From Botryllus schlosseri (lineage: Eukaryota): DNA of 64,000 nucleotides. Numbering within the stretch: position 1 is the first letter of the stretch; each line of letters opens with the position of its first letter. The notes beneath the pieces were generated by a model that worked only from the letters and a program-made list of their open reading frames with translations, had not been told where the DNA came from and did no database searches. A program made the position numbers and the translations under genes. Positions 39,727-63,687 of the stretch are shown piece by piece. The DNA is taken from assembly GCA_051294905.1 (NCBI GenBank), contig CM119381.1:17112001-17176000 (forward strand), read 5' to 3'.

Positions 39727-42700
39727 TTAATCCGTCCCGACACTCGAACAAGCCTTCTGTCGAGAGACGTGACCAAAACGAAGCGGAATTCCCCTTCTGA
39801 CATAGTCATGGAAGTTCGCTACTGGGCAAACTGGAACAGCACTGGAATCTGAGAAAAGGAAGTTGATATTTGTATGATATTTAGGAATTTGATTAGGTTC
39901 CACAATCTTTCATAACAAGCAGAGTGGGATTTAACTAGGAAAGGCTCGTTTGAAAGTAGCCTGCCTATTTCATATAGTCTACAAATCTACTTTTGAACCT
40001 ACAATGGAACTATTGCAATGTTAAGTTCAGCTACACATTTAATGCCGCAACCATTTTATCACCTTATCAGATCGTTGAGAGCTTATTTAGAAGTCAGAGA
40101 TAGTTAAAGTTGCCTCTGATTAAAGTGGAAAGACAGTACGAAGCCTAATTTCAAGAGGATTCTCCAATAACAAATTGGAATGGACACATAACGGCAGTTC
40201 TATGTTGATGTTAAATACGAAAACTATTTTCCATGGTCACAATATAACAATTATAATATCCGAGGAATTGTGGAAAATGCAATTCATGCTTAGTTATATT
40301 CTCAAATAGATATACTTTGTTACTAGCCACCTGAATTGTTAGCAAGGAAGTCATGAATAACCTGTACCAGACAACCGACACGGTCGTATATCTTTGGTAT
40401 AGTCTTTTCCATTCAATAAAACTCTGACATATCCATCGTTGTTGTCACGACCAGTCCACAGTTCAAACACAAGCCTTGATCCTAATGGAGGCCATCTGTA
40501 ATTGTTGTAAGACTAAAAGACCGAGTCACAAGCAGAAGAGTCAAAAAATAGTTACCCGTATTCAGGAATTCCCAACGCACTGATGAGAGGCTTCAACGTT
40601 GTATCATGGCCAGACATCAAAACAAAGTCCGGCACTGTTTCATTACCAGGCGTCATTTTTTTTGTCATGAACTTGGACAGAGTCTCCAGCAATGGTTGGA
40701 TGATTAGCATGGAGTGGTTGACATAGGCTGATTCTTCAATCAGCGCTCTGAAAAGGGATATCAAGGTTGATCATAAGGCATTATAAAAATGGATAGCTGC
40801 AGTCAGGGTTGTAGTGACTAGAGTCATTTTTTTAAATGCGTCAAATGACTCGACTCGAGTCAATTTGTGTATCAACTCGACTTGCACTTGAGTCATTGTG
40901 CATGACTCGAGCCAAGTCATATGACTTGAGACTAGGACAGCCAAGACAGACATTTCATTGTAACTTCGAAGAATAGGCTAGTAAAGTAACCAGCACACTA
41001 TTGGGATTTCGTCTATTGGTACTGATACTTGGAAAATAGGCCCAGAAACCGTCAGGAATAAGGAAAATTACGATATTATGAATGCGAGCCATTCTACACC
41101 ACACGAGCAGAGTTGAAGCGAAAACTGAACTGTGAACGACTTGGACTCGAGTCACAGCACTATGACTCGGACTCGACCCTCTACTCACTGACTTGGACAC
41201 ATACTTGACTCGGTGGTGAATTGAAAATGACTCGACTTGACTCGAGTCAAAACTATAAAATTCGATGGACCTCTGACTCGGAACGTTGCGACTTTGTTAC
41301 AGCCCTGACTGTGGTCTATTCCTTATACTTCTGCCGTCCATATTACAACGCAACTGTTTATCCGCTAGACCAGTGGATTACAGATCAATATGACCAATCA
41401 TTTATGACCTTGACCATATGCCGATATGTTACAGTATTTCATCAATTAATCAATTAGGCAATTAGGCAACCATGAACAACACCATTGTTGGACCATGTGT
41501 AGTGTATTAGTATGTATCTAACATTAGCCAAGCGAACATCATAACATAACATAACATAACATGGTTGGGTTATATTTTTGATCTGAACAAGTCACACACA
41601 ATGTACAATGCGATAAGACACAATGCGATGTCATGAACAGATAGGAGGATGTCGAACGACACGCATCAGTAGCGATCCTTTACTCTAACATCCACCTCGG
41701 CCTAGAGTGCCCGATGTCACAGTTCTTTTTCGATGTTGATCTCTTTGAAACCGCGGCCCTTTCTACTAGTTCTTTTCCATTCATTGTGAGTGCTTACTTT
41801 CGTCGGGTCTTTTTCTGGGCTTTTTTGTCGCCGTAAGAACGGCAACGGCAGGGGAAGAGGAGCCCAGATAAACCTCCGACGGGAATCGAACCCCGTCCGT
41901 CTGCGTGCTGGGCGCTTATCGTAACCACTACATCCTTGTCAGACTAGCTTTTAATCTGTAATCTGTATCACAAACTCAAGGTCCCAAGCCATCGCTTTGA
42001 ATCCTCTTGAATGGAGGGCTGGTTAGAAAAATCTGAATAGCTAGGCGTGTCCACAATACCTGCGGCATAATGATGCATATTGCGCAACAGTCAGGGTGGC
42101 CAGCACAAAATTAGGAGGATCAGAATAATATTTGGGAAGAGTGGAGTTTTGTCAAATTTTAATCAAAGAATGCTATGACGAAGAGTCACAGTCAAAAATT
42201 CTTCCGCATGACAGTGAATGATGGAAGGTAGGCTTCTAGATTCATGAAATCACTGCAACTAATCACACAAGAGAATTTACAATGATATGCATCGAAAAGA
42301 ATACCGAACCCTACCTAGTCGTGTTCTCCTCCGCTTCAATTATCTCATTCAAATCGTCTAAAGTGGTGCAGACGTCGCCCTGGCATGGTAACTTGAAACC
42401 TTTGCATAGAAAGCCATTCACGAAACCATCAATGAGCACACCTGAATTTACAAAAACAATGTAGATAAAATCAGCACATTTAAGAATTTACAACATGTTG
42501 AAGTAAAATGATCAATTAATATCGAGGTACTGTTCAATAAACACATAAATTTGTTATTGGTGCCTACAAGATAGCGTAATGATGAAGCGTCCGGCTTCTT
42601 GATCGGTAGGTCGTGGGATCGATCCCTGGCCGGGTCAGACCAAAGACCTGATTAGTAACACTGGTATCCGTGACTTCCCTGCTTGGCGCTCATGCATTAC

Positions 42701-45700
42701 TGGGATAACATGGAGGGGTGGTGCAAGACTTAGAAAGCAGTAAAAGGCTATATCTGCACCTGCCTTGTCCAGCGGCATATACGCATCATGTACTCATGGT
42801 ATGCATATGCACAGATCGTGTGTATGTATATCATGAGTCGGTGCATATGCCGCAAAAACGTCAAGGACAAAAATAAACTACGTCCTTTCCTTTCTTTCCT
42901 TATGAGAATATACTCATTAGTCAGGGTTGTAACCAAGTCACAAGGCTCCGAGTCACAAGTCAATCTCACTTTTATATTTTTGACTCGAGTCATTTTCAAT
43001 TCACGATCGAGTCAAGTCCGAGTCCAAGTCAGCGATCAGAGGGTCGAGTCCGAGTCATGGTATTATGACTCGAGTCCGAGTCCAAGTCATTGTGTTGACT
43101 GCTCAGTTTCCAGTTAAAGTATTGGTGATAAATGATGAGTTGCCATCCTCAGAATCGCAGCATAAGACTATATAATATGTTGGCAGAGTGCATAGAGATA
43201 CTACGATAAACTACAGGAGAAAAAAAATACATCACAACACAGATACCACACGCCAGGATATAGAGAATGTATCCTCTATTGCACGGCGCAACTGTCAAAA
43301 CGCAAACTACAAATTCAGACATAGATTGCAGAAAGAGGCGATTCGTCACGACAACGGCGAGACGAACGACTTGTCGGAAACATGGCTGTTTAGAAATATA
43401 CAATGACGGATTATTTAGATTTGTTCGTGGATGGCGATGAGAACGCATAAATACAACTCCATTATCAACATTTATATGACGGAGACGTACATCCCATATT
43501 CTCGATATCTGTATAATGTTTCCACTAATTGCACTAATACAACAACATGAACTTCCGAAAAGTATAACGAACCCGAAATTGTCAAACCAAATACCTTTCA
43601 AAAACGCGAAAATCATCTATTTTTTTATTCATATTTATGGTGCATTTGGCAACCCTGCTGAGCTTTACTGGCTTTGGATCGGCAGATGGCTCAATTTACG
43701 CGGGAAACGCGGATAACAAAAATATTCGTACGTACGGAAGTCGTACATGCGAACAAAACTTCCTGGCAACCTTGCGCTGAATCATCCTTCCTGATCCTTG
43801 ATTTTATTGCATGAAAAAGTGAGGCGATAGCGCATAAATATTTCTACCATTGCAGATACCATACCATACCACCATGAAGATTCGACGAGTGAAAAGCGAT
43901 AAATTACGTCGTAATGTCAGCAGGGTTGTAACCAAGTCACAAGGCTCCAAGTCACAAGTCAATCTCACTTCTATAGTTTTGGCTCGAGTCAAGTTGAGTC
44001 ATTTTCAATTCCCACCAAGTCAAGTCCGAGTCCAAGTCAGCGAACAGAGGATCGAGTCCGAGTCATGGTATTATGACTCGAGTCCAAGTCATTGTGTTGA
44101 CTGCTCAGTTTCCAGTTAAAGTCTTCCTAAACCCACTTTTTTAACTCTGTTTGGTGATATTGAATGGTTCGCATTTATAATATATCAATTTTCCTCACTT
44201 TTAGCAGTTTCTGGTCGCATTTTCAAGCACCAGTACCAACAAACAAAATCCCAATTATGTGTTGGCTTTGAAATTACAATGAAATGTCGGTCTTGGCCGT
44301 CTGAATCTCGAGTCAATGACTTGCTTCGAGTCATGCGCAATGACTCGAGTCCAAGTCGAGTCAATACACAGATTGACTCGAGTCGAGTCGAGTCATTTCC
44401 GTATTTTGAGAAAATGACTCGAGTCGAGTCGAGTCATCCGAAAATCGTGACTCGAGTCATTACAACCTTGTCATTAGTACACATGAATTGAATACATCAT
44501 TTAAACATCACAAATCTTTCGCTGCGACTATTAAAAAACAATCATACCAGTGTGATCGCCGGCATTGAAAGCCGCAGCTAGCTTTTTAATAGAAGATTTG
44601 CTCCGATGACCGAGATAAGACTGATACTGTACTTTTTTGATCGATGGCAACATGAAAGACAAAGCAGCGCAACGTTGAGAGCTGAAAGTGTCGCTCGCAG
44701 AATATGCGATCTTCGTCTGAAATATCGTCGAGAATATGTTAAACTGCGTTTCTTCAGCAACAGAACACAACCGTACCTCGTATAAATGAAAACCGGGAAG
44801 CAAACCGTACAGAAAACCAACAGCACTTTGCATAGTTCGTGTTCTAGCTGTGGTGACAGTGTATATAGCTTTTTGCAGTTGTTTCCGGTCTCGTAAAGCG
44901 TTATGCAAGAAGTTATGTCGCTCGATGTATCGCTGCCTCAACATCTTACCGTTATGGATGTGCTGGATCTGTTGGATGCACAAACATTTCAATTACGGTA
45001 TGGAGGTGTTCAAAGTAGACACCGATTTTACTCCATTAGGAGAAACGGCTTACAAGTAGAAGCAGCAACTACTCAGACATGTGAAAACTGCTTCAAATAG
45101 TAGTGGAAAACAGTGCTCGACCTAATAGTTTAGTAGAGGGGTGGCATACTTTAGCAGTTAACTGCAGGCGGCTTTCGAGACTGGAAGATGTGTCTTCACG
45201 ACTGACAAAAAATCACTGATGCACCACAAATAGGTGCAATATTCCAATACATATTTAGTTACCGTGACACAGAGGCGGGCGTGTAACCAAGTCACAAGGT
45301 TCCGAGTCACAAGTCAATCTCACTTTGTTAGTTTTGACTTGAGTCAAGTCGAGTCATTTTCAATTCACCACCGTGCCAAGACCGAGTCCAAGTCAGCTGG
45401 TAGAGGGCCGAGTGTTTGACTCCAGTCCGAGTCCAAGTCATTATGTTCACTGTTCAATTCAATCCGGTTCAACCCATTTCTTCCAACTCTGCTCGAGTGA
45501 TATAGAATAAATCGCATTCATAATGTAGTAATTGTCCTTAGTCTTAACAGTTTCTGGCCCTATTTTCCAAGTTCCAGGACTGATAGACGGAATACCAATA
45601 ATGTAGTAACTTAATTATTCTTCGGAGTTACAGTGAATTGTCTGTCTTGGACGTCCTAGTCTCGAGTCATGCACAATCACTCGAGCACAAGTTGAGTCAA

Positions 45701-48700
45701 TACAAAAATTTACTCAAGTCGAGTCACCAAAAAATCGCGACTTGATTCATTACAAATCAGAGGCCATTTAACGAGTTTTTTATGGTAATTTAACTTATAG
45801 TGATGCAAATTTGTTCCCTAACTGCTGTCTCCTTTACAAAATCCATATTTTAAACAGTTTTGCTTTAAAAACAGTTTGAGTAAAAGGAGTAGAAAAACAT
45901 AACTAATTAAGTAGCACGAGTAGACAGAACATAATTGACAAAAATAAAGTAATTCATTACTGACTACGTTGGTCGTGGTAATTAAAAATAATTCTGCACT
46001 GCAAGTGTTCAGGTCTCACTCTTATTTTCGAAAGAATAGAAACAGCAAAGTGGCTCTTTCAGGGCCACTGAAAAACCGGAAATGTTACTGTGGGTATTAT
46101 AACCAGCACAGTAACATTATATTTTTGTGATGCACGGCATTTTTCGCATTTCATCCGAGTGTGTAAATACTTTCGAGAGTCGATATGGCGTTGGTTCAAA
46201 AATTAAATTACATGATACTTACAACACCAAGCTGACTGAGCATGCCTGGACCACAGATTTTGCTGCTTGGTATGGGGGATATCGGCAACTTCTCTCCGCG
46301 TCTAAGCATGCTCCTTTGATCGTCAGGTATTGCTTTGACGAACCGCGCAAGACTCTCCTCCTTTGGACTTTGACCTGGAAATAAACGTCCTAAGCTCGTC
46401 GTGTCACTATTGGTATGTCAAAGAAACTTACCGGGATCAAGTTTGCAGTATTTTGGGACGACACGCAGCCTTCCATACAACTTATGATTCAAGGGGCTCC
46501 TGTCACCGTGGCGGATTACAACCAGTACTTGCCGCAATGTAAGGTTATCTCTGGGACTTATGCCTGTAATTTTGTAGAAATTGAGAAGCAAACATCTCAA
46601 AGCTATGATTTCATTGTTTGAGGCCATTGCGGTACTGCGCAACAGTTAAACAAGGATACGAATAAGGAAAGTTTGTTATTTAAGTCTACCAGTTGAAAGA
46701 GATTTTAATATTGATTATGAGTAGGGCAATTTATTTTTGACATTCCAAAAAAAGTCAAAATTAGGTGAAAGGTGAAGCGTTAGGTCAAAAAATGTCAAAA
46801 TTGTTTTCAAAGTTAAAACTTTTTTGCCACCTGCATTTCGTTTGTATCATAGATTTTACACTGTCGGTGAACTTATCATCAGACATTTTACAGCTTTTAG
46901 CCTACTTCATAGGCCTACCGTTGTAGACGGCCCATTGTCTGCTCATTGTGAATCATAAACATTTAAATGAAGCAAATAGGTGGACATGGTGTCATGCTCA
47001 ACGAACCGCAATATCCCAACTGAAGGAAGACTGCGTGGGCATTTCATGGTTCTTATATCAAGAAGCGCATGATGAAAAATTGTGATGTAGACACCATTGC
47101 CAGAATGAAGCAACACTGTTTGTCACAAGTAGTGTACGCAAAACTTCAGTGTTGTCAGCCAACAACTGCTGCTGTTGAACGATCTTTCTCCATTCTTTGG
47201 AAGCTACTTAGTAAGGACAGACACTTTCTACCCGAGAATGTAGGAAAGTATCTTTCGTTGTACTGTAATTTTTTTAAATTATTTTTACCATAATGCGTAA
47301 TGTAACTGTCATTCTACAATTCAGAGTTGGATCAATTACATTATTTCAGTTCAATTACAATTAAATTACAATTACTCCATGCTAAAAATATCAAATTACA
47401 ATTACAATTACAATTACTCCTTGCATGCTTCAATTACATTACAATTACAATTGCTGCTGTTGAACATGTAATTGAATAATGATAAATTCAACCGTGCTCC
47501 TTGACAACCGTAGCGTCGTAATTAACAACAATTCAAGTATTCATGTTTCATTCATGATACGCAAATACCCAGTAATTAATAAAAGAAAAACGTTTTCGAA
47601 CTATTCCAGTATGCAGTATTGCAGTATGTCGTTGAAAAAAGTATTATAATCATGCACGGGTTGGATTTGCGTATATAGTATATAATTAAAGAAATATTAT
47701 TATTTTTATCGAGGGACGTAGGAATTAGGATGAGGGGTGAAAACAAAACCGTGCTTTGTCAGATAAGACGTTATATAATATCCAGTGGTATGGTTAGTTA
47801 GACAGACGAAGTAACGATGCAGCATCGTGATCTGAAATCGTATTGTAGATTGCCAACCCACGGATAGATGCGCAAGATGTGAGTAACGGATGAATGCACC
47901 GACAAACGTACTGCAGAGCCGGCTAAAAGCAGCAAACTTTGTAGTCCTAGAGCTGGCGATCCAAGTGTCCAAATTTGATGCATCTGGTCTTTATCGTAAG
48001 CTATTGATGCACTAATTCCGAAAATACAAATTAAAATCTCGGAAGGGCAATGTAACTGCTACAAAATAGCCGTTTAAGGCCGCCTGTTCTGAAAAGTGAG
48101 AGCGCCGCAGCAGCATGACCACAACAATGACCAATTACTCCCAGCGATTGTTCAGAACAATGCCGATTCCCAGACCTTCACGACTATTTTGAGATGGTAC
48201 CATTGCCTGGAAATATACTTTTATTGCGGAATCAGTGCGACACTAGCTTTCGATTAGGACCATACATATCAAATTTCGACGCTTGGATCGTTAGCTATGG
48301 GACTATCAATTCTGCTGCTTTTAGCCGGGTCAGCAGTCCGCTTCTCGGCGTATTCAATCGTGAGTCACGTGTTGCGAATCCATCCGTTGGTTAGTAATCT
48401 AATAATTGTATACAATGGCAGCCGAGGCCAGCATAGCGGTAAAAATAAAAAACTTCGCCCGCAGGGGCGCAGTCAAGGGCTTCCGCGAATGGATCCACCA
48501 AATTCCTTGTCGACATTCAAAGAGAATGCATTATAAGTCAATTATTTTATGTTGTGCTTGTCAGGTCTCAATAGCAATTTAATGTAATTGAAATTGTAAT
48601 TGAGCAAAATTTTTGTCAAATTACAATTACAATTACACAAAATAAAAATGCTTCAATTACAATTACATTACAATTATATTGAAATATGTAATAATTACAT

Positions 48701-51700
48701 TCAATTACATTACAAATTACAATTGATCCAACTCTGTTCTACATAGGGACAGATTTCGTTAAAATAAAGTTTTTCTATGTAAAAATTTGTGAGCTTCTCA
48801 GGCAAAAAAGTTTTTTTTCAAGCCGAACTACTTCATAAGGACAGACAGTTCGAACCAGAAATGAAGATAAGTGGTACAATTCTAACATTATGTGGGAAAA
48901 CAAAAAATTTGCATACGTCAGGTTAAATTTGGTCTTTTGTTTTCAGGTAAAAAAATCGACCTAATTACGAGTATTAAGCAGTCTAGCTAGGGTGAATGCG
49001 TTGAGTAGGTATTAGCTAGGCACAATTATTATGTCAGGGAAAAGCTCCAGTAATCCAAAAAATCCCAGATATCAGAAACAAAAAAAGGACGTTAAATAGC
49101 AACAAAAGTCGGAGGTTATTCTACGTTCTGTCATCATATATAGAGTATGCTGAAATAAACTTGAATACAGAACTAAGCTTGACTAGCTAGTTTGTCATCT
49201 CAGAAATTCCCTCAACACTTGCGTTTAGGAAGATTACTGCAAAAATGCTAGTACTGTGTATCCAAACCTACCTTCCTCAGACGTGCCGAAATCAGTGGAA
49301 GATGGGAAGTTACAATAGCGCAACGCCGACGATACATCTAAAATATCAACGTCTTAAAATATCAATTTTCAAGTCCAAGCAACGAATTGGAAAATATAGT
49401 GTACTTGTGAAGCTTCCAGCTTCTTCATTATTAGGTCGTGGGTTCAAAAACCCTGGTCGTGCAAGACCACAAAGACCTGATCCGTAAACCAGTGGTTTCT
49501 TAGCCCAATTTGTTTGGAAAATAGGCTATTTGACTTTACCTGTGCTTGTTATACCAATGTACAAACATTCTGATATCCAAGTGAAAATTTCAATGCTACA
49601 CTACAACCTAATCGACGGGTGAATGACCTGGCCTATCGATGCTGCAATTAGTACCACGTTAGTTATCAGTCCTAGACCCAGAATTGATGGACATGAGCAT
49701 TGAACAAGTTGAGGATTAGCTCACAGTCACAAATACAGCCATCCCGATCTCAAAAATCACTTAATAAATGAAGCGATCAGTACACACGTTCAGCAGTTAG
49801 AAAGTTAAGATACTAAAGGTATGCACATAATAAGGTATAAATAAATTTTCAAATCATAGCTTCAAGCATACTTCATGGTATATCTTACCAGTGCTTTCTT
49901 TATCATTAGGCTTGGGAGTAATAGGACTGGAGGAACTTGAAAAGTTGATCCCGTGATGAATTGGTGCTTCTTTCACACAGAAGTAGACTGAAATTATGAG
50001 TACATATGCTAGGTACGCATTGCAGACTCACAGAATCCCATAGTGCAGAAACGTGAAACTGTATGTGGCAGTGTTGGGATGACTCGAGTCATGACTTGAC
50101 TCGAGTCACCTTTTTCGTATGACTTGACTTGACTCGAGTCACTTTGCTAAAATGACTTGACTTGGCGTACCAGAAATGTGGATTGACCCATGACTCGGAG
50201 CAAAATTCACGAGTCAATTTCAAGTCATAAAGTAATCGGTGTCGATAAAATATCTGTATCTTGCATATGGTCGGATTGTTCGCGAAACGCTGGTGTAACC
50301 TGTGAGAGCTACCAATCATTCAATGATCGTGCGTTTTACTGAGCCTCCAATGTTCCCTCACAAATAAATTGACCACGAACGAAGTGATCGGTATAGTAAA
50401 GTCATTTAACAGCAAAATCTCTATCTCCGTTCTTGCCTTAACCTCTTGTTTTATTGATACTGAATTCTAATATAGTTTATGTAGTCCTTAACATTGGCGC
50501 AGGCTCTTGTGTTGTATCATATCAACTTGTAAATGGGTAACGTATTGCAAGTTATCAATTCGTTTCTTTATTCTCTATTTGGCTGGTAACTATAAACTGA
50601 GCATATGCAATTACTTGCTTAGTTTAGCAGTTCTACGTATATGTGAATGATACAGCGCCTTCTTGCGCGTATATTGAGCTCTATATTTATTCATCGGTTC
50701 AGAATCAATGACCACTCAATATGTATTTCAGACAGCTAGCAAAATGCAACGACGTTACCTTGCCTCATGCTTCGAAAAGGCAACTTGACTTGAATTGTGA
50801 CTTGACTCGTGACTTGACTTGACTCGAGTCACCTCCAAAAATCGAGTGACTTGACTTGACTCGAGTCAAAATGTGCAATGACTCGAAATGACTCGCGACT
50901 CGAAGGTAGTGACTTGATCCCAACACTGGTATGTGGTGCGAGGTATTTAGTAACTTCCTCAAGGTTCTGCCAAGAAAAAAAATGAAGCAAAGAGAAAATT
51001 TTGCAAGGCATTTTGCACAGAAGCATTAAAATAGTATGTGCACACTACAGCTGTTCAAATTAAACTTTTGTCCCAAATTTCATCGACGTTGTGATCAATG
51101 TTAGGGATGCATAAAGAATACTGCACACCACATTTGGCTCGTTTCCAAGCAGTGGCATCAGACTAATTTGAATTAGAAATTTCAGCCATTTAAAATATAG
51201 TATTTTATGTAACAAATTTCATCACTTTGCTATGACCAAAATTATATTCAAGTCATGCCCGAAAAGGACCAGTGATTAAAGTTCCCCCTAAGCTGTCCGC
51301 GTGCGCGCCCGGGCACTGCATGAAATGATGACGTTTTTTCAGTCGTTACGCACTGTTGTACAAGGGACCGCGCAGCGAGTTGGTGAGTGCGCGCAGACTC
51401 ATTAAAAATTAGACGGAACTTTGCCTGTGATCAAGTTTGGATAAAGACATTGTCAATTAATGAAAAAATATTTGACATTGATTAGCTAGAAATTTTCCAA
51501 CTTCATTGATATGATTCTAAAATATATATTTTCCACCGCTTTGGTGTGCACTGTACGATTTTGATGCAGGCAACAGTGGAAATTGTACTCCTTGGTCATC
51601 ATTCATCTTCATTTTTATTTATTTTAAATCAATATTGTATTCACATTTAAATCTTACCGACACAAATAACACTCGAAACGATGCAGACGACGAAGCCGAT

Positions 51701-51733: not shown

Positions 51734-52300
51734 GATTGCTTCCGTACATTAGGTCCATACAGCTGTCTTTCGACATAGTTTGGTTGGTTTCAGACGAAGT
51801 ATTCAGGCATTGACAGAGAGACGGCCAATCCGTTGCAGCATATAGCTAGGACATAATCTAATGCGACAGCTTATGTCTGAAATGAGGATCACATTTGAGT
51901 AAAAGGAACATAAAGTCCACTATCCAAAACTAATGCGAGTCACATGATAATATCCTCATATGTGGGATATACTAATATATATATATACTATATATACTTA
52001 TAACACACTTACGCCATTTACATTTTGTTTTGTCTTATCTTCCTGTAGAAACTATGTATCAATATTATACAAAACATGCACTTAAAAATCAGATTATATG
52101 ACATATTAATTTCAGTAAAAACACAATAATAATCATAAAAACAATATATTACGTTATACATTGAAGACCGCCGTGTTCAGTTCAGTACAGTATTTCAATA
52201 GCAACAAAAGAATCGTGTTACGTTACTTCCTCCACTCAAGGAGTGGAAAACATATACAGTCATGACTGGGACGGTCAATCTTTCGGGTTGACCTGGATTA

Positions 52301-55016
52301 TCAGCAGCGCTTGACATGATCAGCAGGTACAGAGCCCGCAGTCTTTTCACCATAGGTTACTACAAGTTTTCCACCCATTCCCCTACCATAACGAGTGCCA
52401 ATTTCTTCCCATAAATAATCATTAAGCCAAGAAGGAGTGGAAGGACATTCCTGTAGGGCTACGATCTCAAATTCCCCGCCGGGTCCGTGGCGAACCGGAT
52501 TCGGCAGATGCAAGTTATGAATTCGATACTTGTCGCAGTAGGCTATCCCCAGTTGTTTGAATTTGCTTTTGTCGCCGGATCGGAAAAACACAGTCACAGG
52601 CAGCGATTCATCTATCCCTTCAAGGCGAAGTGTAGAGCTGAAGAGTAAATCCGCGCCATCATCTGATTTTGCCCAGTTCACATCGTCAAGGCGCATATCG
52701 GCAAACTTTTTCCATGGAACAAACACAAAATCCATGGTATAAGTTCTCGGATACTCCTGCACTAGGAACTCCCGGAATTCAACTTTATTGTCCAGCATGG
52801 TACAGCGGAAATCCTCCACCATGCAAGGATCCACGCGGAAACGGTGGCTTTGGTTCTCGTGACTGTAAGTGGGCTTGGCGAGTTTCTTCCTCTTCTGGCA
52901 CTTTATGGTGAATTCTGCTGAAGTCTTGCTAGGATCTGTGACTGGGAAGTAAACCTCAACAGCCTCTTGGTACCAATCTCCGGCTCTCAACCTCGCTTTT
53001 AAGAAGACTTGTCCGCGGCATTTAGAAAGTATGACTTTGTGAGGTTGACTTTCAACGGTAATGGGCTGCAAGGCGCTAGATGACATGAGAGGAAACAATG
53101 ACTGACGACTGAGATGAAGGTAGCGCAAATTGCCAAAAACATCGATCCCAGGGTGAAAATCGGCGTAAAAACGTGGGTACGGTATGTTGATGACGTGATA
53201 TTTACAATATGGTGCTAGAGATTTCCAAAATTTTGCTTGATTGATTTCGAATTCTTTGGAGCCCAGAACTTCCTTCACCCAGCTGGGTGCGAATATCGCT
53301 GCCGATAGGGAATACCTGAAATTCAACATCCACAATTAAGTATTCAATGAAAATAAGAACTAAGCCTTACTTTCTGAGTACTTTGACGGCGACCACACTG
53401 TTCATACCACCCCCTCCATAACAGCCTCTGCCAAACACATCCACTCCCACATAGACATCCGTCACCCTGGACATTACCTTCGCTAACTCAGCGGACTTCT
53501 GTAGACCGATTTCATTCCAAGAGTAGTTCAAAAAATACCGTCACAGAGGTCGAAAAATGGTCTGTCAAAAATGATTACATTCCAAGTACAAACAGTTTGT
53601 GGTTAATCCAGAGCTGTTTTGACCACTATGGGATTAAAGCTTGAACCAGTTAGCCTATATATGTGAAATACAAGACTTTCAAGCAAAATTTACAAAATTC
53701 CGACTGAATAATTTAGCAACTTTTCAGACAGTATAAACAAGTCCAGCAAAAACATAGTAACATAGGACATAATCTAACGCGACAGCTTATGTCTGAAATG
53801 AGGATCACATTTGAGTAGTAGTTTCTCAAGAAAACGAACAGTTGCGTTCCAACAAGATTACGGATCACATAGACTTTAATTGAGCCACATAGAACACATT
53901 TAATATCAAAGAGACAGCCGCTAATGTTTCATTCAATTAGAGTTTACATTCCTTGCTCGTAGTTAGTTACATAGGTGTTGTCGGAGACGTTGTAGTTAGA
54001 TTGATTTCGAACTTCGGAGGGTTAGGCTACCAGTCGAAGAACCACTCAAATAATCATGAAAAAAAATCTCACAAAACATATGGTCAATTAACTCACCGGT
54101 TTTTTACATTGAGTTCATTCTGCCGCAATATCACTCCCTCAACAGTGACACTATCATACCAAATAATTTGACTGCTAGCAATGGCACAGTGCATTTCATT
54201 CGTGAGATACTGCACGAAATTCTTCAACCTGCCCACGTTTTCAGGCTGTTGAAAAAAACAGACCGTGCGTAACCATGACTTATGATTTTTGAGCGTGAGC
54301 AATGGGCATACAACTTACCTCTATATCGTTTTCAATATTCAAAAGCCAACCCTCGAATTTATAATATTTGGCAATGTGGACAAGGGCATCTGCGACCAAT
54401 TTCCACGCCGAGTCGCTTGAAAAAATAGCTTCACATCTGCAATGCCAGAAATTTTCATAAATGCATCAACGTGAAATTCCAGTAGCCTACCTCCTGAAGC
54501 CCTCTTCACCCTCGGTTATGAACGTGCCCAACACGGTCACACCATTCCTGTGTGCACAATTGATCCACCCTACTGGAGGTATGGTGACAAAATGATGACT
54601 GAAGTAAACAAATGTGTCTACCACATCCCAATAGACCATGTAATACCAATTGTCATCCTCACACAAACTACCCTGAACAAATCTGCATAGGGACGAATCA
54701 ACACAATACAACCCACCATAATTAAAAACAAAATCTATTACCTGTCATTCAAGTATCCTCCGCCCATATCATGACACACCAGTGTTTTTGGTGATGCGTC
54801 AGGTCTGTCTTTTCCATGATATGGGGCAGACGCAATGGAGAATGACTGACCCTTATCATGACTATCATTTGATTTCCAAGCCAACAGTTCTTCCAAATTG
54901 TCAAGTGGTTTGGTCACTGGAAGACCGTTCTCAACACTTCTTCCTATGAATTGAGTGGGATCATCGTAGTTCACATCTAAGTGAATTTTGTTTGTGATGT
55001 ATGGTTCTTCTTCCAT
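52301..55016 (-). CDS. ENGASE: Cytosolic endo-beta-N-acetylglucosaminidase (GH85), paralog 1, 6 exons
   Basis: Approximate exons: 54742-55016 (KTLVCHDMGGGYLNDR), 54488-54682 (FVYFSHHFVTIPPVGW...HRNGVTVLGTFITE), 54319-54436 (FEGWLLNIEN, catalytic), 54107-54255 (IIWYDSVT), 53364-53553 (FLNYSW, VYVGVDVFGRG), 52301-53317 (SAAIFAPSWV). No signal peptide. Confidence 0.93.
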
Positions 55017-56159
55017 CTTGTTTGAATTGGTTGGATTTTGCTAAAAACAGGTCAAATGTTTGTGTATAATAATTAGTTCAAGTTAAGTCTTTTCTGAAAC
55101 ACATGTAGCCAATCTTCTGGAACTGACTGGTGACATTTAAATGATTCACCATCGACTTTATTTTTAGCATCAAGTTAAATTATCGTGAGATTTACCCCAT
55201 GAACCACATTGCATCGCAACTTCACTTTATATTAGGCGGCCACAGATTGTTCCACAGACAAAAGACAACAAGGTTTAATTATAGCAGGGACAAATACATG
55301 ACCAAGGTAAAAGTTTCAATTGATTGCTTCTGGAGGGAATTAATGGAAAGCTTTTGTTATAACGCCTTTATATCCTGTGCTTTGGTACCTCCTGTAGTTT
55401 AGAAGGAATAATAAACATATGAAATCGAAGTTCATATGACACTGTCTACGCTCAACAAAAGTTATTAAATAATACTATCATTACAATGAACAGAATATTC
55501 AAGAATTTCACGCATTCACATTGACTTGCATGATTATACAAGCGAACATTACAACTACATCGCATAAACAAGTTCAAATACACATGTGTCGAGTTTCCTG
55601 CGATTCCGTTTGCTTCAATGGATTCGCTTATCCAATAATAGGATGCGACTAGGGCTAAAACATCAGACAGATAGGTAACAAAGAATCTTAAATATAGATA
55701 TAGGCCTATATACCAAAACGAGAAACAGACCTTGACACAGGCAAATTAAAAAGATTCTATTCGACATTCAATGAACTCACCAATGACAATGAAACCGGAT
55801 AAGCGCGCAGATTGCTTGTTCCAGAGGTGATGGACTAGGTGGCTGCATGCGTACCGGACATACGCAGGATATATGAAGAACCATCGTAGTTAATAATTGA
55901 CTAGAATTCTTGATGCTAAATAAGTCTGAAGTGCCGAGTAGGCTAAAACAATTAGTAAGCTCAGGAATAGTGTGCTGGTAACATGTGCTTGGTGCAAATA
56001 ATAACGAATTCAAGTCAAATTGGACGATGATTATTCAACTTCAAATCGCGTAAAAACAACCAAAGGCAAATGATCACATAACATGGTCGGCACACTAAAG
56101 TCTGAAAGATCCATGCAAAGGCGAAAGATTTGAGGGAAATAAGGGGAAGAGCTTCTTGG

Positions 56160-56410: not shown

Positions 56411-57882
56411 TTAGGGGAGTAAATGGGGTTTCAAAACTCATTAATAAAGAAATTATTTGGAAAATTGGAATCAAATCAGCAAGTTGGATTGCTTCTTATA
56501 TTCACCACCACACCCATCTATTCGTATTACATGTATTTTACTCTGAGGTGAAAAACTAGTTGCGCGAATATTTCCACACAGATTTGTCCAAAAAAACAAG
56601 TTACATTTAAACATATTTCTGAAGTAATAAATCAAAAGAAACATTTTAAAGTATGATACATTGCAGCTGTCGTATCTGTAATCTAGATTTATCCATGCGA
56701 GCCACTGTTGCCTCCCTGGCGAAATCAGTGCTAATATTGAAAATGAAATTATCACATTTCACCAGCTCGTTTAATTAGGGGTACCATATGTTGTCTTTTA
56801 AGAGGGTTTGTCCTCTTTCAGTAGGATTTGCCCCTTTTTTCAAGAAATTTAAAATGTCTTCCGAGGATGCCCAAATGTCCACATTTTATACCTGTGAGAG
56901 TCAGGCGATTGTACACTAGGGTTACCATATTTTGGGAATCTGAAGGACTATTTTGAAAATTTCCAGACTCACAATTGGAAAAATTGGTAAATTCATTGCA
57001 ATCTTGTAGTTGGTTGACTAAAAAAAGGTCATTTCATTGAATTTTATCTAAGTTGAATTTTAACATACATTTAACCAAAATTTTCAAAAAGCGGACATTC
57101 AAAATTGTCAAAAAAGAGGAAAAATCCTCTTGAAAGAGGACGTATGGTAACTCTACTGTAAGCTACACGGACAACTAAAAATGACAATGTAGACGCGAAA
57201 ACTGGGTTTCGACAACACTGGAGGAAGGTAGTTTGACTGAAAAAAAGGTCAGCTATGAACGAATATACTTGGAAGTGGGTCTTTCGGTAGTCGAGTTGGA
57301 AAAATTACCTTTTTTTGGTCAAATCATCAACGATAACCATAGAGATTACAAAATTTTCCGTATTGGTGTAAGCTATTGTGTCTTTCAAAAAATGTGTCCT
57401 CTTCCCTAGTTTAATACATATCACAATTAATGTCACATCAGGTAGTTGATAGAGATGCAATTATTAAAATACGACATCAATATTAACAGATCGCTCTGGT
57501 GCCATGGCAACCCAAAAATTATACCCTTTGTGACCCATACTTTGAGAAAACTTTGAGGGGGAAAATTTGCGTCACAATAACTTGTAATGACGAGTCTGTA
57601 ATGATGGTAGACTATTTACTACTATCGTCGTGCTTTGTGCCTATCGAACTATTATTAGGAAAATATGATGATTGTTCTGACTTTTGATTACGTAATAATA
57701 ATTAATTCGCTACAGTTGGTGCGAGACAAAGATACTGTCAAAGCTACGATTAGTGGTGCGTCGTAAGTCAAACAAGTTTTTACAATTGTGTCGCAACGAA
57801 AAAAGTTAGGGAGCCAATGCACTCGAATTTATTATTCGGTTTATTTGAATTATTCCACGTCAGAAAAAGTAACAATTATTTA

Positions 57883-58387
57883 CAGGGTTGTAATGACTCG
57901 AGTCACAATTTTCTGATGACTCAACTTGACTCGACTCGAATCAATTTGTGTATTGACTAGACTTGGACTCGACTCATTGCGCATGACTCGAAACTCAGAC
58001 CGCCAAGACCGACATTTCATTGTAATTTCGAAGAACAAGTGAAGTAACCACCGTATTGGGATTTCGTCTATTGGTGCTGGTATTTGATAATGCGACTGAA
58101 AACTGTTTAAAGTGAGGAAAATTAGTATTTTATACATGCGAAATCACCAAAAAGAGTTATAAAAGTGGGTTTAACAAAACTTTAACTGGAAACTGAGCAG
58201 TCAACACAATGACTTGGACTCGGACTCGAGTCATAACACCATGACTCGGACTCGAACCTCTGCCATATGACTTGGACTCGGACTTGACTCGGTGGTGAAT
58301 TGAAAATGACTCGACTTGACTCGAGTGAAAACTATAAAAGTGAGATTGAATTGTGACTCGGAGCTTTATAAATTGGTTACAACCCTG
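57883..58387. mobile_element. Intact GACTCGAGTC-family hAT MITE
   Basis: cagggttgtaa / ttacaaccctg TIRs with exact 8-bp TSD ATTATTTA on both sides. Confidence 0.92.
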
Positions 58388-58854
58388 ATTATTTATGATT
58401 TTCATCCGCACAGCACAACGTTCGTTATCCTCACTGCAATTTGTTTTCATCCGGGTTTTCACATGTTGAAAAGCACTGGTATATAGTATTTGTCGAATAT
58501 TTTGCTATCAAGAAACAGAACTGTACAATCCAACTAACCTGAAGGCATAAATCTTGTGTGTTTTATGCAATCAGCGCACATTACTACATTATAGCACAGC
58601 TGTAATTCATTAAATACGCAACATAACAGCATTTTCAATGCGCCGTCTACCTTAACGTATAACCATGTAACGAACAATTGATGTTCCGCTTAACTCGGAC
58701 ATACCCGTTTCTAAGTTTAATTTGACGAGAAGTGAGTGGAATCAAGTTGTCCAAATTCAGCGGAGAGGACTGTATTTTCAAATTCGTACTTCTACTGGTA
58801 ATAGAGTGGAAATTTACAGCTTTACTTCTCCTTCACTACCAACGTCAACTAATT

Positions 58855-60022
58855 TTACCACTGCCGGCCGCGCGAGACACATTTAACACGTACGGGACCG
58901 GTAGTCTTTTCGCCATAAGTTACTGCGAGCTTGCCGCACTTGTAATTCAAATAGTTAGGCCCGACCCGTCCAAAGAAATTCTGTATACGATGTCTCTGTT
59001 CGACTCTGATCACAAATTTTCCATCCGGTCCATGGCGAACTGGATCCGGCAGGCGCAGGTGATGAATTCGATACTTGTCGCAGTAGGCTATCCCTAGCCG
59101 TTCATATTCGCTTTTGTCGCCGGAGCAGAAAGACACAATCACAGGCAGCGATTCATCCATCCCTTCAAGGCAAAGAGTAGAGCAGAAGAATATATCCACA
59201 CAATCGTCCGATTTTGCCCATGTCACTTCATCTAGACGCAGATCGATTTCATTTCCCTTTGCATCAGGGGGACACAAGTAGTTAAATGGTGCCACGAAGA
59301 ATTCCTGGATTTCAACTTTTCTGTTAGACGTGGTGCAGAGGACGTTTGCCGAAGAACAACTTGCGGTGACATCTACCTTAGTCTGGATCGTATCTTTGAC
59401 TTTGGCATGACCAATATAACTTATTTCCTCGCCAAGGTCGGCTCTCATCTTGGCTTCGAAGAACACTAACCCTACTTGCCCGGGATACGCCGAAAGTACG
59501 ACTTCGTGAGGTCCACTTTTGAGGGGGACGGGAAGAAAAGGGCCAGATGACATTTGCGGAAGCAAAGACTGACGGCTGAGATGAAGATAACGTGAATCCC
59601 CGCAGACCTCGAAACCAGGGTGAAAATTGGTGAAATATTCCTGAAGTGGTACGTTAACAGCGTGACGTTCGCAATATGGAGCTAGTGCTTTCCAAAATTT
59701 TGCTTGATTGATTTCAAAATCTTTAAAGCCCAGAACTTCCTTCACCCAGCCTGGCGCAAATATCGCCGCCGATAATGAATACCTGAAATTTGACATCCAT
59801 AATTTAACATTGAAAGAAAAAAGTGCAACAATCATACCTTCTGAGTACTTCGACGGCGGCAGCACTGTTCATGCCACCCCCTCCATAACAGCCTCTACCA
59901 AACACATCCACTCCCACATAGACATCCGCCACCCTGGATGTTAACTGAGCGGACTTCTCTAGACCGATTTCATCCCATGAGTAGTTCAGAAAAATACCAT
60001 TGCAGCGGTCGAAAAATGTTCT
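58855..60022 (-). CDS. ENGASE: GH85 ENGase paralog 2; only the last two exons are visible
   Basis: Exons ~59838-60022 (FFDRCNGIFLNYSW...VYVGVDVFGRGCYGGGG) and 58855-59787 (SAAIFAPGWV...LGIAYCDKYRIHHL), with the same intron position as paralog 1. Upstream exons were not found in 60023-64000. Confidence 0.8.
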
Positions 60023-60710: not shown

Positions 60711-63687
60711 TAGGGTTGTCCAAAATTTGGAAAATCTTAAAAATACTCCGTGATTGTGTCTCATTCTATAGATTATTGATAAAAAACAACAAGCTCACAG
60801 GAAAGCCGTTAGATTTCGGGCAAAGCGTTTGAAAGTAACTCCCCACGAATTGGCAGGCAACCGACCATAGAACAGCGAGAAGACTAGTAATCAAGTACCC
60901 ACATTGTTGGTAGGTTGGCAGATGATGATCAAACAATAGCTGCTTCCAGAAAACATTTACAGCATGACTGCTTTATTGTGAAGGAAACGGCTGTAGCATA
61001 CATGCCGTGTTTTCATCGAGGGAAAGCAAAAGTGCTTATGCAAGTGGTGAACGAATTACCCTTTCAGAATGGATCCATCATCATCATCATCATCATCAGT
61101 GAATACGAATATAAAGCTTAATAATGACACTATAATTTCTGAGATCTTATTGGGCTCAAGCTGTAGTATATAGGTGACGGTTTGAATGCTCTAGGGATCG
61201 GATGTATCAGCGGGGTTATGCTTGGCACGTATCAGCTGCTTAAGGCAAATTGAATTCCCTTTCAAGTATTGTCAAAGTCCCTGATGATAACGCAGATATG
61301 AGGTGTAAATGTGTACGCGCAGGCCATGCTGGATATGGTATGTCAAATTGTCAAAGTCCTTATTGATCCCGCCGAAAAGAGGTGTAAAGAAAAGCCCAGA
61401 CTATGCTGTATAGCAGAGGTCTCAAACACGCGGCCCGCGACGGCATTTTGGAATTTCAAGTAATCAACAATATATATATCATCATATATCTTTTTAGATA
61501 TAAGAACTTAAATTTCACGCAAAAACTACTATAAAAATCACTGTGATCCCAACAAACATCACTATCACATCACTTTTAAAAGCTACCATGCGGTAGAAGA
61601 TCAGCTATTACGTCACATTTCTAGTTCATGATGAAAAAACATGACCCGTTGATGATTCGCGAATGAAAATTGTGATTTGTTTAGGTGCGACCTTCTCGTA
61701 AAATTACTTGATTTCGGATTGACTGGGTTATTAAATAAAAATGACTCGAGTTGAGTCGGGTCAAACGCTGAAATCGAAGAAGGACTTGCGAGTGCGACTC
61801 GGAATAGTGACTTGGTAATCCTACGGGCGCATCAATCTATGCAACTTTCATGGGGAATACTAATATAAAAAGGTCGTAGCTTGTGTTGCGTAGGGTATAT
61901 ATAATATTTATTCAGGTCAGTATGGCAACCATGGGTATTCTGTTACCCCGGTGACGTATATAGCTGGTTAAACGCGGTATGTTGTTTTTTCTCTTCATCC
62001 ATGTAATTATCGGTGGCGAGTAAGGTGGTAGTACGCTCTACAGCTGTAACAACAACGAATTCTTCGGCGATTGGACATTTCCATTCCAGGGGTTCTTAAT
62101 CAGGGTCCGTAGACCCCGTCGGGGTACGAAGCACCACATCAGGGAGTAAGAGATGCATTGTAGAATTTGTAGACCCATATGCTGTGGAATATTTTCTTGG
62201 CCAATTTTTTCCAACTGTAAAATAGTCTTCGTGTTACACACGATTTTGTGAATGGGCTTTCTGATTTAAATAGCTACCATAAGAAATTGTGTTGAAAATG
62301 GACAGGGGCTACTACTTATTGGAAGCACAGGGGGTACGATCACTAAAAAGGTTACGAAGCAATGTTATTACTATGGCTCAATAATGAGTGCATCTAAGTT
62401 GTTATTGATATATCGAAGGCAAAATATTATGCTTTTTTTAATTTGTGTTTGGCAATGACAGTAACAATAGCCTATAATTACCACAACGATATCAAAACCA
62501 TAGGATTAGGCTACACCGCTCAAAAGCTCTGATATCAGATCAATCTGTTAAAATAGTCTACATGAAGTTGTTGCTCGTCATAGGTCCACTACTTGCAATA
62601 TTATAACCTGACAGTTTAACGACGTCATGAATGCATGCATCCTCTCACATGAAGTCTATAACTAGTTAATTAAAAAATTCTCCCCGGCACAAAAAGAATT
62701 TCATTCAAATATTTGAAAATGTGATTTTTTTACGTATCAAAAAGCGTTGATAGTACAATAGTAAATTACATTTACACGATGTTTTTGGAATGCCTGTCTG
62801 CAAGGTCCCGTCAAATAAGGCCATTAAATATCCCTATCATTGATGCTGCGGCCCGCGGCGTCATCAAAACTAGGAAATTGGCCCGCGAGCACGTTTGAGT
62901 TTGAGACCTCTGCTGTATAGTGTCCAGCATAGTTTGGATATCAATATCCAACATAGTCTGTGGTCACCTTACCACTCTATTCTGCAGCATCATTAAGAAC
63001 TTTGACAAAACTTACAAGTGGATTCAATTTGCTGTAAGTATAACTGTCATGCAAAACCGGGTGATTCAGTCAATCCCTAGAGCATTCAAAACTTCAACTA
63101 TATACTACAACTTGGGTCCAATAAGATCACACAAAGTATAGTGTCATAGTTGAGCTTTACATTTGTATTGACTGATGATCGATCCCTTCTGAAACGGGGA
63201 CTTCGTTCACCACTTGCATAAGCGCCTTTGCTTTCCCTTGATGAAAATACAGCATGTAGGCTACAGCCGCTTTCTTCACAATAAAGCAGTCATGCTGTAA
63301 AGGTTTTTGTGAAGCAGGTGTTGTTTGTTCATCATGTATTTCGTACCTCAACATGTCCTGAATTAATCTTAAATCATCATCTGCGAACCTACCAACACTG
63401 CGCATTCATAATCCCTGTCGGTAGCTGACTCCAGCAAGTTGATACTGTCGTGATCATTGAAGCATAGCCAATCAAGAGCCGTGGTTATTTGATTACTAGT
63501 CTTCTCGCCGTTCTATGGTCGGTGGCGCGCCCATTCCTGGGCAGCTACTTTCAAACGCTTTGACCGAAATCTTAAGGGCTTTCCTGTGAGCTTCTTTCAG
63601 GCTCATTGTTGTTTTTTATCAATAATCTACAGAATGAGACACAATCACTGAGTATTTTTAAGATTTTCCAGATTTTGGACAACCCTA
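60711..63687. mobile_element. Foldback element with TAGGGTTGTCC termini and ~700/770-bp inverted arms, interrupted by a MITE
   Basis: 60711-61413 is the diverged reverse complement of 62921-63687. Flanks gcgaatag/gtgactag match 6/8 and are a probable decayed TSD. Confidence 0.85.
61414..62912. mobile_element. hAT MITE (CAGAGGTCTCAAAC termini) with a further nested MITE at ~62086-62364
   Basis: TIRs plus exact 8-bp TSD CTGTATAG (61406-61413, 62913-62920). Confidence 0.9.

Follow-up and report, generated by a model that had tools for sequence, protein, structure and literature searches.

Arginine at the Endo-A Trp216 position in two of the four ENGase copies of the tunicate Botryllus schlosseri

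The closest described counterpart of the gene examined here is Endo-A of Arthrobacter protophormiae, a GH85 enzyme in which Trp216 contacts N-acetylglucosamine-asparagine (GlcNAc-Asn) and, together with Trp244, acts as the gate-keeper for the acceptor (Yin et al. 2009, PMC2646837). That paper states, citing Fujita & Takegawa 2001, that replacement of Trp216 by Arg abolished transglycosylation; a direct literature search for Endo-A W216R returned no paper, and the statement is known to us second hand, through PMC2646837. Here we describe paralog 1, a six-exon ENGase gene on the minus strand of a stretch of 64,000 nucleotides from Botryllus schlosseri (assembly GCA_051294905.1, contig CM119381.1, forward-strand positions 17,112,001 to 17,176,000). 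This whole stretch is called the window, and positions are given in its numbering. In paralog 1, and in a neighboring copy, paralog 2, an arginine stands naturally where Endo-A has Trp216. The engineered W216R enzyme reportedly retains hydrolysis.

Paralog 1 resembles Endo-A W216R in belonging to GH85, in carrying the same one-base change from Trp to Arg at the same position, and in having its catalytic residues intact. Unlike that engineered protein, it is an animal enzyme of the cytosolic type with a naturally occurring Arg, known here from its sequence, and the equivalents of Endo-A Trp244 and Tyr299 are Ser and Phe, respectively. It shares its domain order, its motifs, and the lack of an obvious signal peptide with other animal cytosolic ENGases, such as those of Styela clava (P0001), Ciona (P0152), and vertebrates. 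In contrast to the other tunicates, which each yielded one ENGase sequence with Trp in the searches made, there are four copies here, two of them with Arg.

Two further systems show a natural non-aromatic residue in the same column. One is the characterized GH85 enzyme Endo-D of Streptococcus pneumoniae (PDB 2W91/2W92), which has His. Unlike the tunicate copies it is bacterial and secreted, has His rather than Arg, and is distant (E 1e-7 to the tunicate-type domain). The other is a cluster of ENGase-like proteins from Montipora corals (P0159 cluster), animal proteins that keep GWLMNIEN and WYDS intact while the gate Trp has given way to a residue one base from TGG; this residue is Gly, not Arg, as in P0262 and P0263 of Montipora capricornis (XP_068717847.1 and XP_068717543.1), and the event is an independent cnidarian one. 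Literature searches on ascidian ENGase and for H371W found nothing.

The arginine codon and its register with Endo-A

Read on the minus strand, positions 54161-54108 encode the peptide W-Y-D-S-V-T-V-E-G-V-I-L-R-Q-N-E-L-N, with the Arg codon CGG at exactly 54125-54123, 11 residues past the Tyr of WYDS in exon 4. A preliminary description of the window, made from its letters, had located this codon to the base, while the span it gave for the peptide, 54107-54160, was off by one.

To these letters we compared four public runs (X3, X5, X6, and X23) over positions 52100-55300. X3 consists of DNA contigs from the sample used for the assembly, and X5 comes from a different sample and study. The base proved unchanged in both: the X3 contigs (record 4, 53788-54161) agree with CGG, and so do two X5 contigs, one a spliced transcript contig (53561 joined to 54097, reaching 54126) and the other covering 53895-54126 (record 12). 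The Arg codon is genuine and not an assembly slip. Sequencing error was rejected on the strength of the X5 transcript contig, from another study, and of the same CGG in paralog 2. All five modeled introns were confirmed in X5 and X6 contigs (joints 54682/54742, 54436/54491, 54245/54319, 53561/54097, and 53315/53371), so paralog 1 is transcribed and spliced as modeled, in two independent studies.

Membership of paralog 1 in GH85 is given by the PF03644 profile, whose curated cut-off is 22.2 bits: exon 2 scores 85.6, exon 4 scores 42.7 (E 6.7e-11), and exon 5 scores 46.7, and the whole locus reached 120.7 bits in a genome-wide scan. When exon 4 alone was compared with PDB sequences, no GH85 chain was matched; the exon is too short to find Endo-A, and the register was therefore taken through a full-length protein from Styela. 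A phmmer library search with exon 2 returned 150 GH85 proteins, the closest of which was P0001, a cytosolic ENGase-like protein of Styela clava. Aligned with the Endo-A chain 3FHA, P0001 places GWFINQET (167-174, with N171 and E173), WYDS (204-207, with Y205), and AWQN (W216) in register, and the stretch from WYDS to WQN is ungapped with maximal posterior support. The same stretch is ungapped between P0001 and all four genome copies. This ungapped transitive alignment makes Arg236 of paralog 1 homologous to Endo-A Trp216, bearing out the gapless register given in the preliminary description.

Through the same alignment, GWLLNIEN at codons 185-192 of paralog 1 corresponds to Endo-A GWFINQET, so the catalytic Asn-x-Glu is present, and the Tyr that orients the 2-acetamido group (Y205 in WYDS) is kept as Tyr225. 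The earlier statement that NIEN (codons 189-192) and the WYDS Tyr are intact is thus correct, and paralog 1 combines Arg at the Trp216 position with intact catalytic residues, as Endo-A W216R does. The aromatic residue that is typical of GH85 in this column, and that is not itself catalytic, is absent from paralogs 1 and 2. Elsewhere in the pocket, Endo-A W93 and F125 are both represented by Phe (in VYFSHH and LGTFI), F243 by Tyr, and Y299 by the Phe of AAIFAP. These positions are identical in all four copies, the exception being Ser or Thr at the W244 equivalent.

To place the residue in the family we extended the alignment, as the preliminary description had proposed, to GH85 at large, paralog 2 included. 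Among 206 sampled GH85 homologues with a WYD motif, the column holds Trp in 195, Tyr in 8, and Gly in 1, with no genuine Arg. One Arg and one Lys in the raw tally were discounted as a mis-spliced fragment and a wrong instance of the motif. The single Gly represents the Montipora cluster, several members of which share it and have NIEN intact. Five other tunicate ENGases all have Trp. On this sampling, Arg at the Trp216 column is very rare, and natural loss of the aromatic residue there is not unique. What is more, the Trp-to-Arg replacement is the sole change common to paralogs 1 and 2 at columns that are invariant in the other seven tunicate sequences. Arg is also the commonest one-base replacement of TGG (CGG, AGG), so agreement with the engineered mutant is to be expected whenever the Trp is replaced and is unremarkable in itself.

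Four ENGase copies and their history

A six-frame PF03644 scan of the whole assembly found four GH85 loci, all on contig 11: three in a minus-strand tandem and one 10 Mb away. The upstream exons of paralog 2 were looked for in the window and were not there; exons 1-4, including the CGG codon, were found 0.4-1.4 kb past its end (C11:17176443-17177390), and intron 4 is 4.4 kb long. Paralog 3 lies a further 4 kb upstream of paralog 2. All four copies have the same six-exon structure with canonical GT-AG splice sites, and the open frames of paralog 2, paralog 3, and the distant copy run to 614, 635, and 644 amino acids. The Trp216 column is encoded by CGG in paralogs 1 and 2 and by TGG in the other two. 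Paralog 2 also has Asn in the CDGIF motif, in place of an Asp that is otherwise invariant, and a deletion of 3 codons.

Pairwise identity among the four copies is 63-75% overall (66% for paralogs 1 and 2, 75% for paralogs 2 and 3). Two Styela-type proteins are 48-52% identical to them, and the ENGases of Ciona, Phallusia, and Clavelina about 40%; the closest ENGase in the database, that of Styela clava, reaches 48-50%. In a maximum-likelihood (ML) protein tree the four group together, with 100/100 support, as a clade next to the Styela pair, which makes the expansion specific to this tunicate lineage. A four-fold ENGase expansion is unusual for a tunicate. Neither paralog 2 exon 4 nor paralog 1 exon 6 had a match in an index of 5.8 billion proteins, which means that the species' own ENGases are absent from that index.

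We estimated the ratio of nonsynonymous to synonymous substitution (dN/dS) for each pair by the Nei-Gojobori method (NG86), taking codons 1-330 as the catalytic domain. In this domain, dN/dS ranges from 0.13 to 0.30 among all the pairs, with dS of about 0.42-0.53, and is 0.19 for paralogs 1 and 2, whose dS is about 0.48. A star-tree least-squares split gives values of about 0.26 for paralog 1, 0.14 for paralog 2, 0.13 for paralog 3, and 0.32 for the distant copy. The C-terminal half evolves faster, with dN/dS of about 0.28-0.58. The catalytic-domain values show that the Arg copies have been kept as working genes, under purifying selection for most of their history. Together with the gene model and the transcripts, they led us to reject an old pseudogene. 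The preliminary description had proposed a duplicate specialized after gene duplication. Lineage-specific duplication and purifying selection are in keeping with this proposal; the change is not private to paralog 1, however, paralog 2 having CGG as well.

Exon 5 of paralog 1 carries a frameshift in the reference. It is 191 nucleotides long, compared with 192 in paralog 3 and the distant copy, and a run of six T (T6) makes its sequence GGT ATT TTT TGA where paralogs 2 and 3 have GGT ATT TTT CTG AAC; the sequence of paralog 2 at this site is TTTTTCTG, and that of paralog 3 is likewise. The resulting stop at codon 256 falls within the barrel and leaves a protein of 255 residues that ends shortly ahead of the equivalents of Endo-A F243 and W244. 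The X3 contigs, from the assembly's sample, agree with T6 (insertion in 0 of 12.4 depth). The X5 spliced transcript contig, on the other hand, has T7 (insertion behind plus-strand position 53529, 20.9 of 20.9 depth) and reads ATT TTT TTG AAC (I-F-L-N, followed by Y), restoring a frame of 646 amino acids with 0 internal stops. T6 is either a polymorphism of the reference individual or a homopolymer error common to the assembly and the X3 run. The still open exon 6 (338 codons) and the intact T7 transcript argue that T6, as a null allele, is recent. Besides the T run, the reference and the X5 and X6 contigs differ at six coding positions: three differences are synonymous, and three are conservative replacements (T8I, A62V, and S601T) outside the pocket. 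A seventh, also synonymous, is confined to a single DNA contig from the sample used for the assembly.

A separate observation concerns a further exon 4. An X5 spliced contig with a loose end at 54319 runs from exon 3 into an exon 4 that starts P-K-N-T-D-R-L-K-D-F, which matches none of the four copies and may reflect copy-number or strong allelic variation between samples.

What the arginine copies may do

We favor, with a probability of about one half, the reading that the Arg copies, paralogs 1 and 2, work as ENGases with a remodeled +1 subsite: hydrolysis would be retained, binding of a GlcNAc acceptor would be poor, and the preferred leaving group might differ. In this scheme a single TGG-to-CGG change would have put Arg at the Trp216 position of both copies, in place of an aromatic residue that, in the +1 subsite where the leaving group or acceptor sits, stacks on GlcNAc(-Asn). 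Both Arg copies have been under purifying selection and keep the catalytic Asn-x-Glu and Tyr, along with the rest of the pocket residues mapped. By analogy with Endo-A W216R, the Arg copies should still hydrolyze the chitobiose core with little transglycosylation, and they would probably prefer another aglycone or leaving group than paralog 3 and the distant copy do. We infer all of these enzymatic consequences, the loss of transglycosylation by analogy. The suggestion in the preliminary description that paralog 1 is a hydrolysis-only specialist is a fair hypothesis that draws on a distant bacterial enzyme; since cytosolic ENGase already has hydrolysis as its physiological task, there is no obvious driver of selection to lose transglycosylation.

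Several observations weigh against a remodeled, working pair. Endo-A is a distant bacterial homologue, about 25-30% identical, and its two-tryptophan gate, in which W216 faces W244, has no counterpart here: the W244 column holds Ser in the two Arg copies, Thr in the two Trp copies, and Gly, Thr, or Leu in the other tunicates. The gate model drawn from Endo-A may thus fail to apply here. Paralog 1 has a null allele in the reference and forms the longest branch of the tree (0.46, compared with 0.13 for paralog 3). Raw RNA reads of X23 gave 0 on paralog 1 with about 6% of the run sampled, a count that has no bearing on expression. The CGG of paralog 2 is known from the assembly sequence alone. 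What is more, a short X5 contig on 54133-54173 has unmatched ends, of which the upstream one is identical to paralog 2 (T-D-E-M-H-S-A-V-T-G) and the downstream one, ten letters in paralog 2 context (GTA CTC TCA), ends in TGG rather than CGG. The Arg of paralog 2 may be polymorphic, or the X5 sample may hold further or divergent copies.

The branching order of the copies belongs with these points. The protein ML tree has open forks, quartet-informative sites split 48:39:33 with a slight lead for paralogs 1 and 2 together, and intron identities are without clear signal. On this evidence the Arg of paralogs 1 and 2 may go back to one change before their split, or may have been copied from one to the other by gene conversion.

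The best-surviving rival, which we hold to be rather unlikely, is that the two are redundant duplicates drifting to loss, the Trp-to-Arg replacement being mildly damaging but tolerated and paralog 1 on its way to becoming a pseudogene with no new function. Such redundancy would be provided by paralog 3 and the distant copy, which still hold the ancestral Trp. The stop at codon 256, with which the DNA contigs of the same sample agree, the length of the paralog 1 branch, the replaced CDGIF Asp and 3-codon deletion of paralog 2, the possible TGG allele in X5, and the fast evolution of the C-terminal domains, at an omega of 0.3-0.65, all fit this account. On the other hand, the Arg copies are separated by a dS of about 0.48 with a dN/dS of 0.19, a sign that purifying selection has acted on them for a long time since the replacement. 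Splice sites are canonical throughout, paralog 2 is open over 614 amino acids, and exon 6 of paralog 1 is open as well. Correctly spliced transcripts of paralog 1 come from two independent studies, an allele with an intact frame exists, and the differences between the reference and the X5 and X6 contigs are synonymous or conservative and spare the pocket.

Doubtful in our view is a second alternative, in which the copies were neofunctionalized for substrate choice, the Arg opening or charging the +1 subsite for a modified or acidic reducing end that Trp-bearing ENGases would exclude, for example a charged aglycone or a GlcNAc with a core substituent. Core-fucosylated glycans are substrates of Endo-D, and an Endo-M mutant altered at the other gate Trp reportedly gains this activity. 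The natural His of Endo-D and the Gly of Montipora, with its intact NIEN, indicate that the family tolerates non-aromatic residues here, and paralogs 1 and 2 share Ser at the W244 equivalent where paralog 3 and the distant copy have Thr, although that column is variable anyway. The proteins are, however, without an obvious signal peptide, and free oligosaccharides of the cytosol are of the high-mannose type without core modification, which counts against such a specialization. The position itself would suit the proposal, Trp216 being the residue that contacts the GlcNAc-Asn of the +1 subsite in Endo-A (PMC2646837).

Equally doubtful is the proposal that the Arg copies form a tunicate-specific subfamily whose re-charged +1 subsite would confer a distinct substrate or leaving-group specificity, or strict hydrolysis, compared with the ancestral Trp copies. 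That the Arg is an artefact of sequencing or assembly, or a rare allele private to the reference individual, is very improbable: there is one assembly only, X3 comes from its own sample, and contigs drop rare variants, but the same CGG is found in the X5 spliced contig, from a different sample and study, and in paralog 2, which is just 66% identical to paralog 1 overall.

Surrounding sequence and wider bearing

The features of the array are collected in the table. Intron 4 of paralog 2 contains two similar inverted open frames, at 60915-61121 on the plus strand and 63157-63405 on the minus strand, with further ones at 60724 (plus) and 63674 (minus). The first two both contain L-Q-H-D-C-F-I-V-K and, farther on, Q-V-V-N-E, and look like an inverted pair of a repeated element. 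Around the ENGase array there is also a dispersed repeat family, seen as many similar short open frames on both strands with M-T-R-V-K and S-S-P-S-P-S-H-C-V-D-C-S. Two minus-strand open frames, at 40552-40764 and 46418-46642, have R-H-G-D-R-S-P and G-H-D-T-T-L, motifs typical of histidine acid phosphatases, and are likely to be exons of a phosphatase gene on that strand.

Table. Positions of the ENGase features and of the repeats around them, in window numbering unless marked C11.
Feature	Position	Strand	Basis or remark
Paralog 1, six-exon GH85 gene (ATG at 55016, stop at 52301)	52301..55016	-	Gene model, spliced contigs, Pfam
Paralog 1 exon 1, with ATG	54742..55016	-	Joint 54682/54742 in X6
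Paralog 1 exon 2, GH85 profile positions 11-65	54491..54682	-	Pfam, gene model, contigs
Paralog 1 exon 3, carries GWLLNIEN	54319..54436	-	Sequence, alignment
Paralog 1 NIEN motif, codons 189-192	54339-54328	-	Translation
Paralog 1 catalytic Asn and Glu	54339-54337 and 54333-54331	-	Equivalents of Endo-A N171/E173
Paralog 1 exon 4, WYDS and Arg codon	54097..54245	-	Pfam, gene model
Paralog 1 Tyr225 of WYDS, Y205 equivalent	54158-54156	-	Translation, alignment
Paralog 1 CGG, Arg236, Endo-A Trp216 position	54123..54125	-	Translation, contigs, alignment
Paralog 1 exon 5, 191 nucleotides in the reference	53371..53561	-	Gene model, contigs
Paralog 1 T run (T6, 53535-53530), then G A	53528..53535	-	Reads ATT TTT TGA; stop 53530-53528
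Paralog 1 exon 6, C-terminal domains, intact 338-codon open frame	52301..53315	-	Gene model, contigs
Paralog 2, exons 5 (59838-60020) and 6 (58855-59782) in the window	58855..60020	-	
Paralog 2 CGG codon, Trp216 column	C11:17176469-17176471 (469-471 nucleotides past window end)	-	Assembly
Dispersed repeat frames	41221-41457, 42748-43117, 43804-44119, 44185-44491, 50089-50319, 57880-58486	both	

GH85 enzymes are the main tools of chemoenzymatic glycoprotein remodeling, and their balance between hydrolysis and transglycosylation is tuned by a few pocket mutations. With Arg and Trp copies in one genome, paralogs 2 (Arg) and 3 (Trp), the closest pair at 75% identity, are a ready matched set on the role of this residue. 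Cytosolic ENGase is, in addition, medically relevant in NGLY1 deficiency. If the Arg copies are merely slightly impaired duplicates, the finding is an ordinary one. If they do form a distinct Arg subfamily, this tunicate would offer a natural experiment in GH85 gate engineering, with the Trp-to-Gly replacement of Montipora as an independent parallel.

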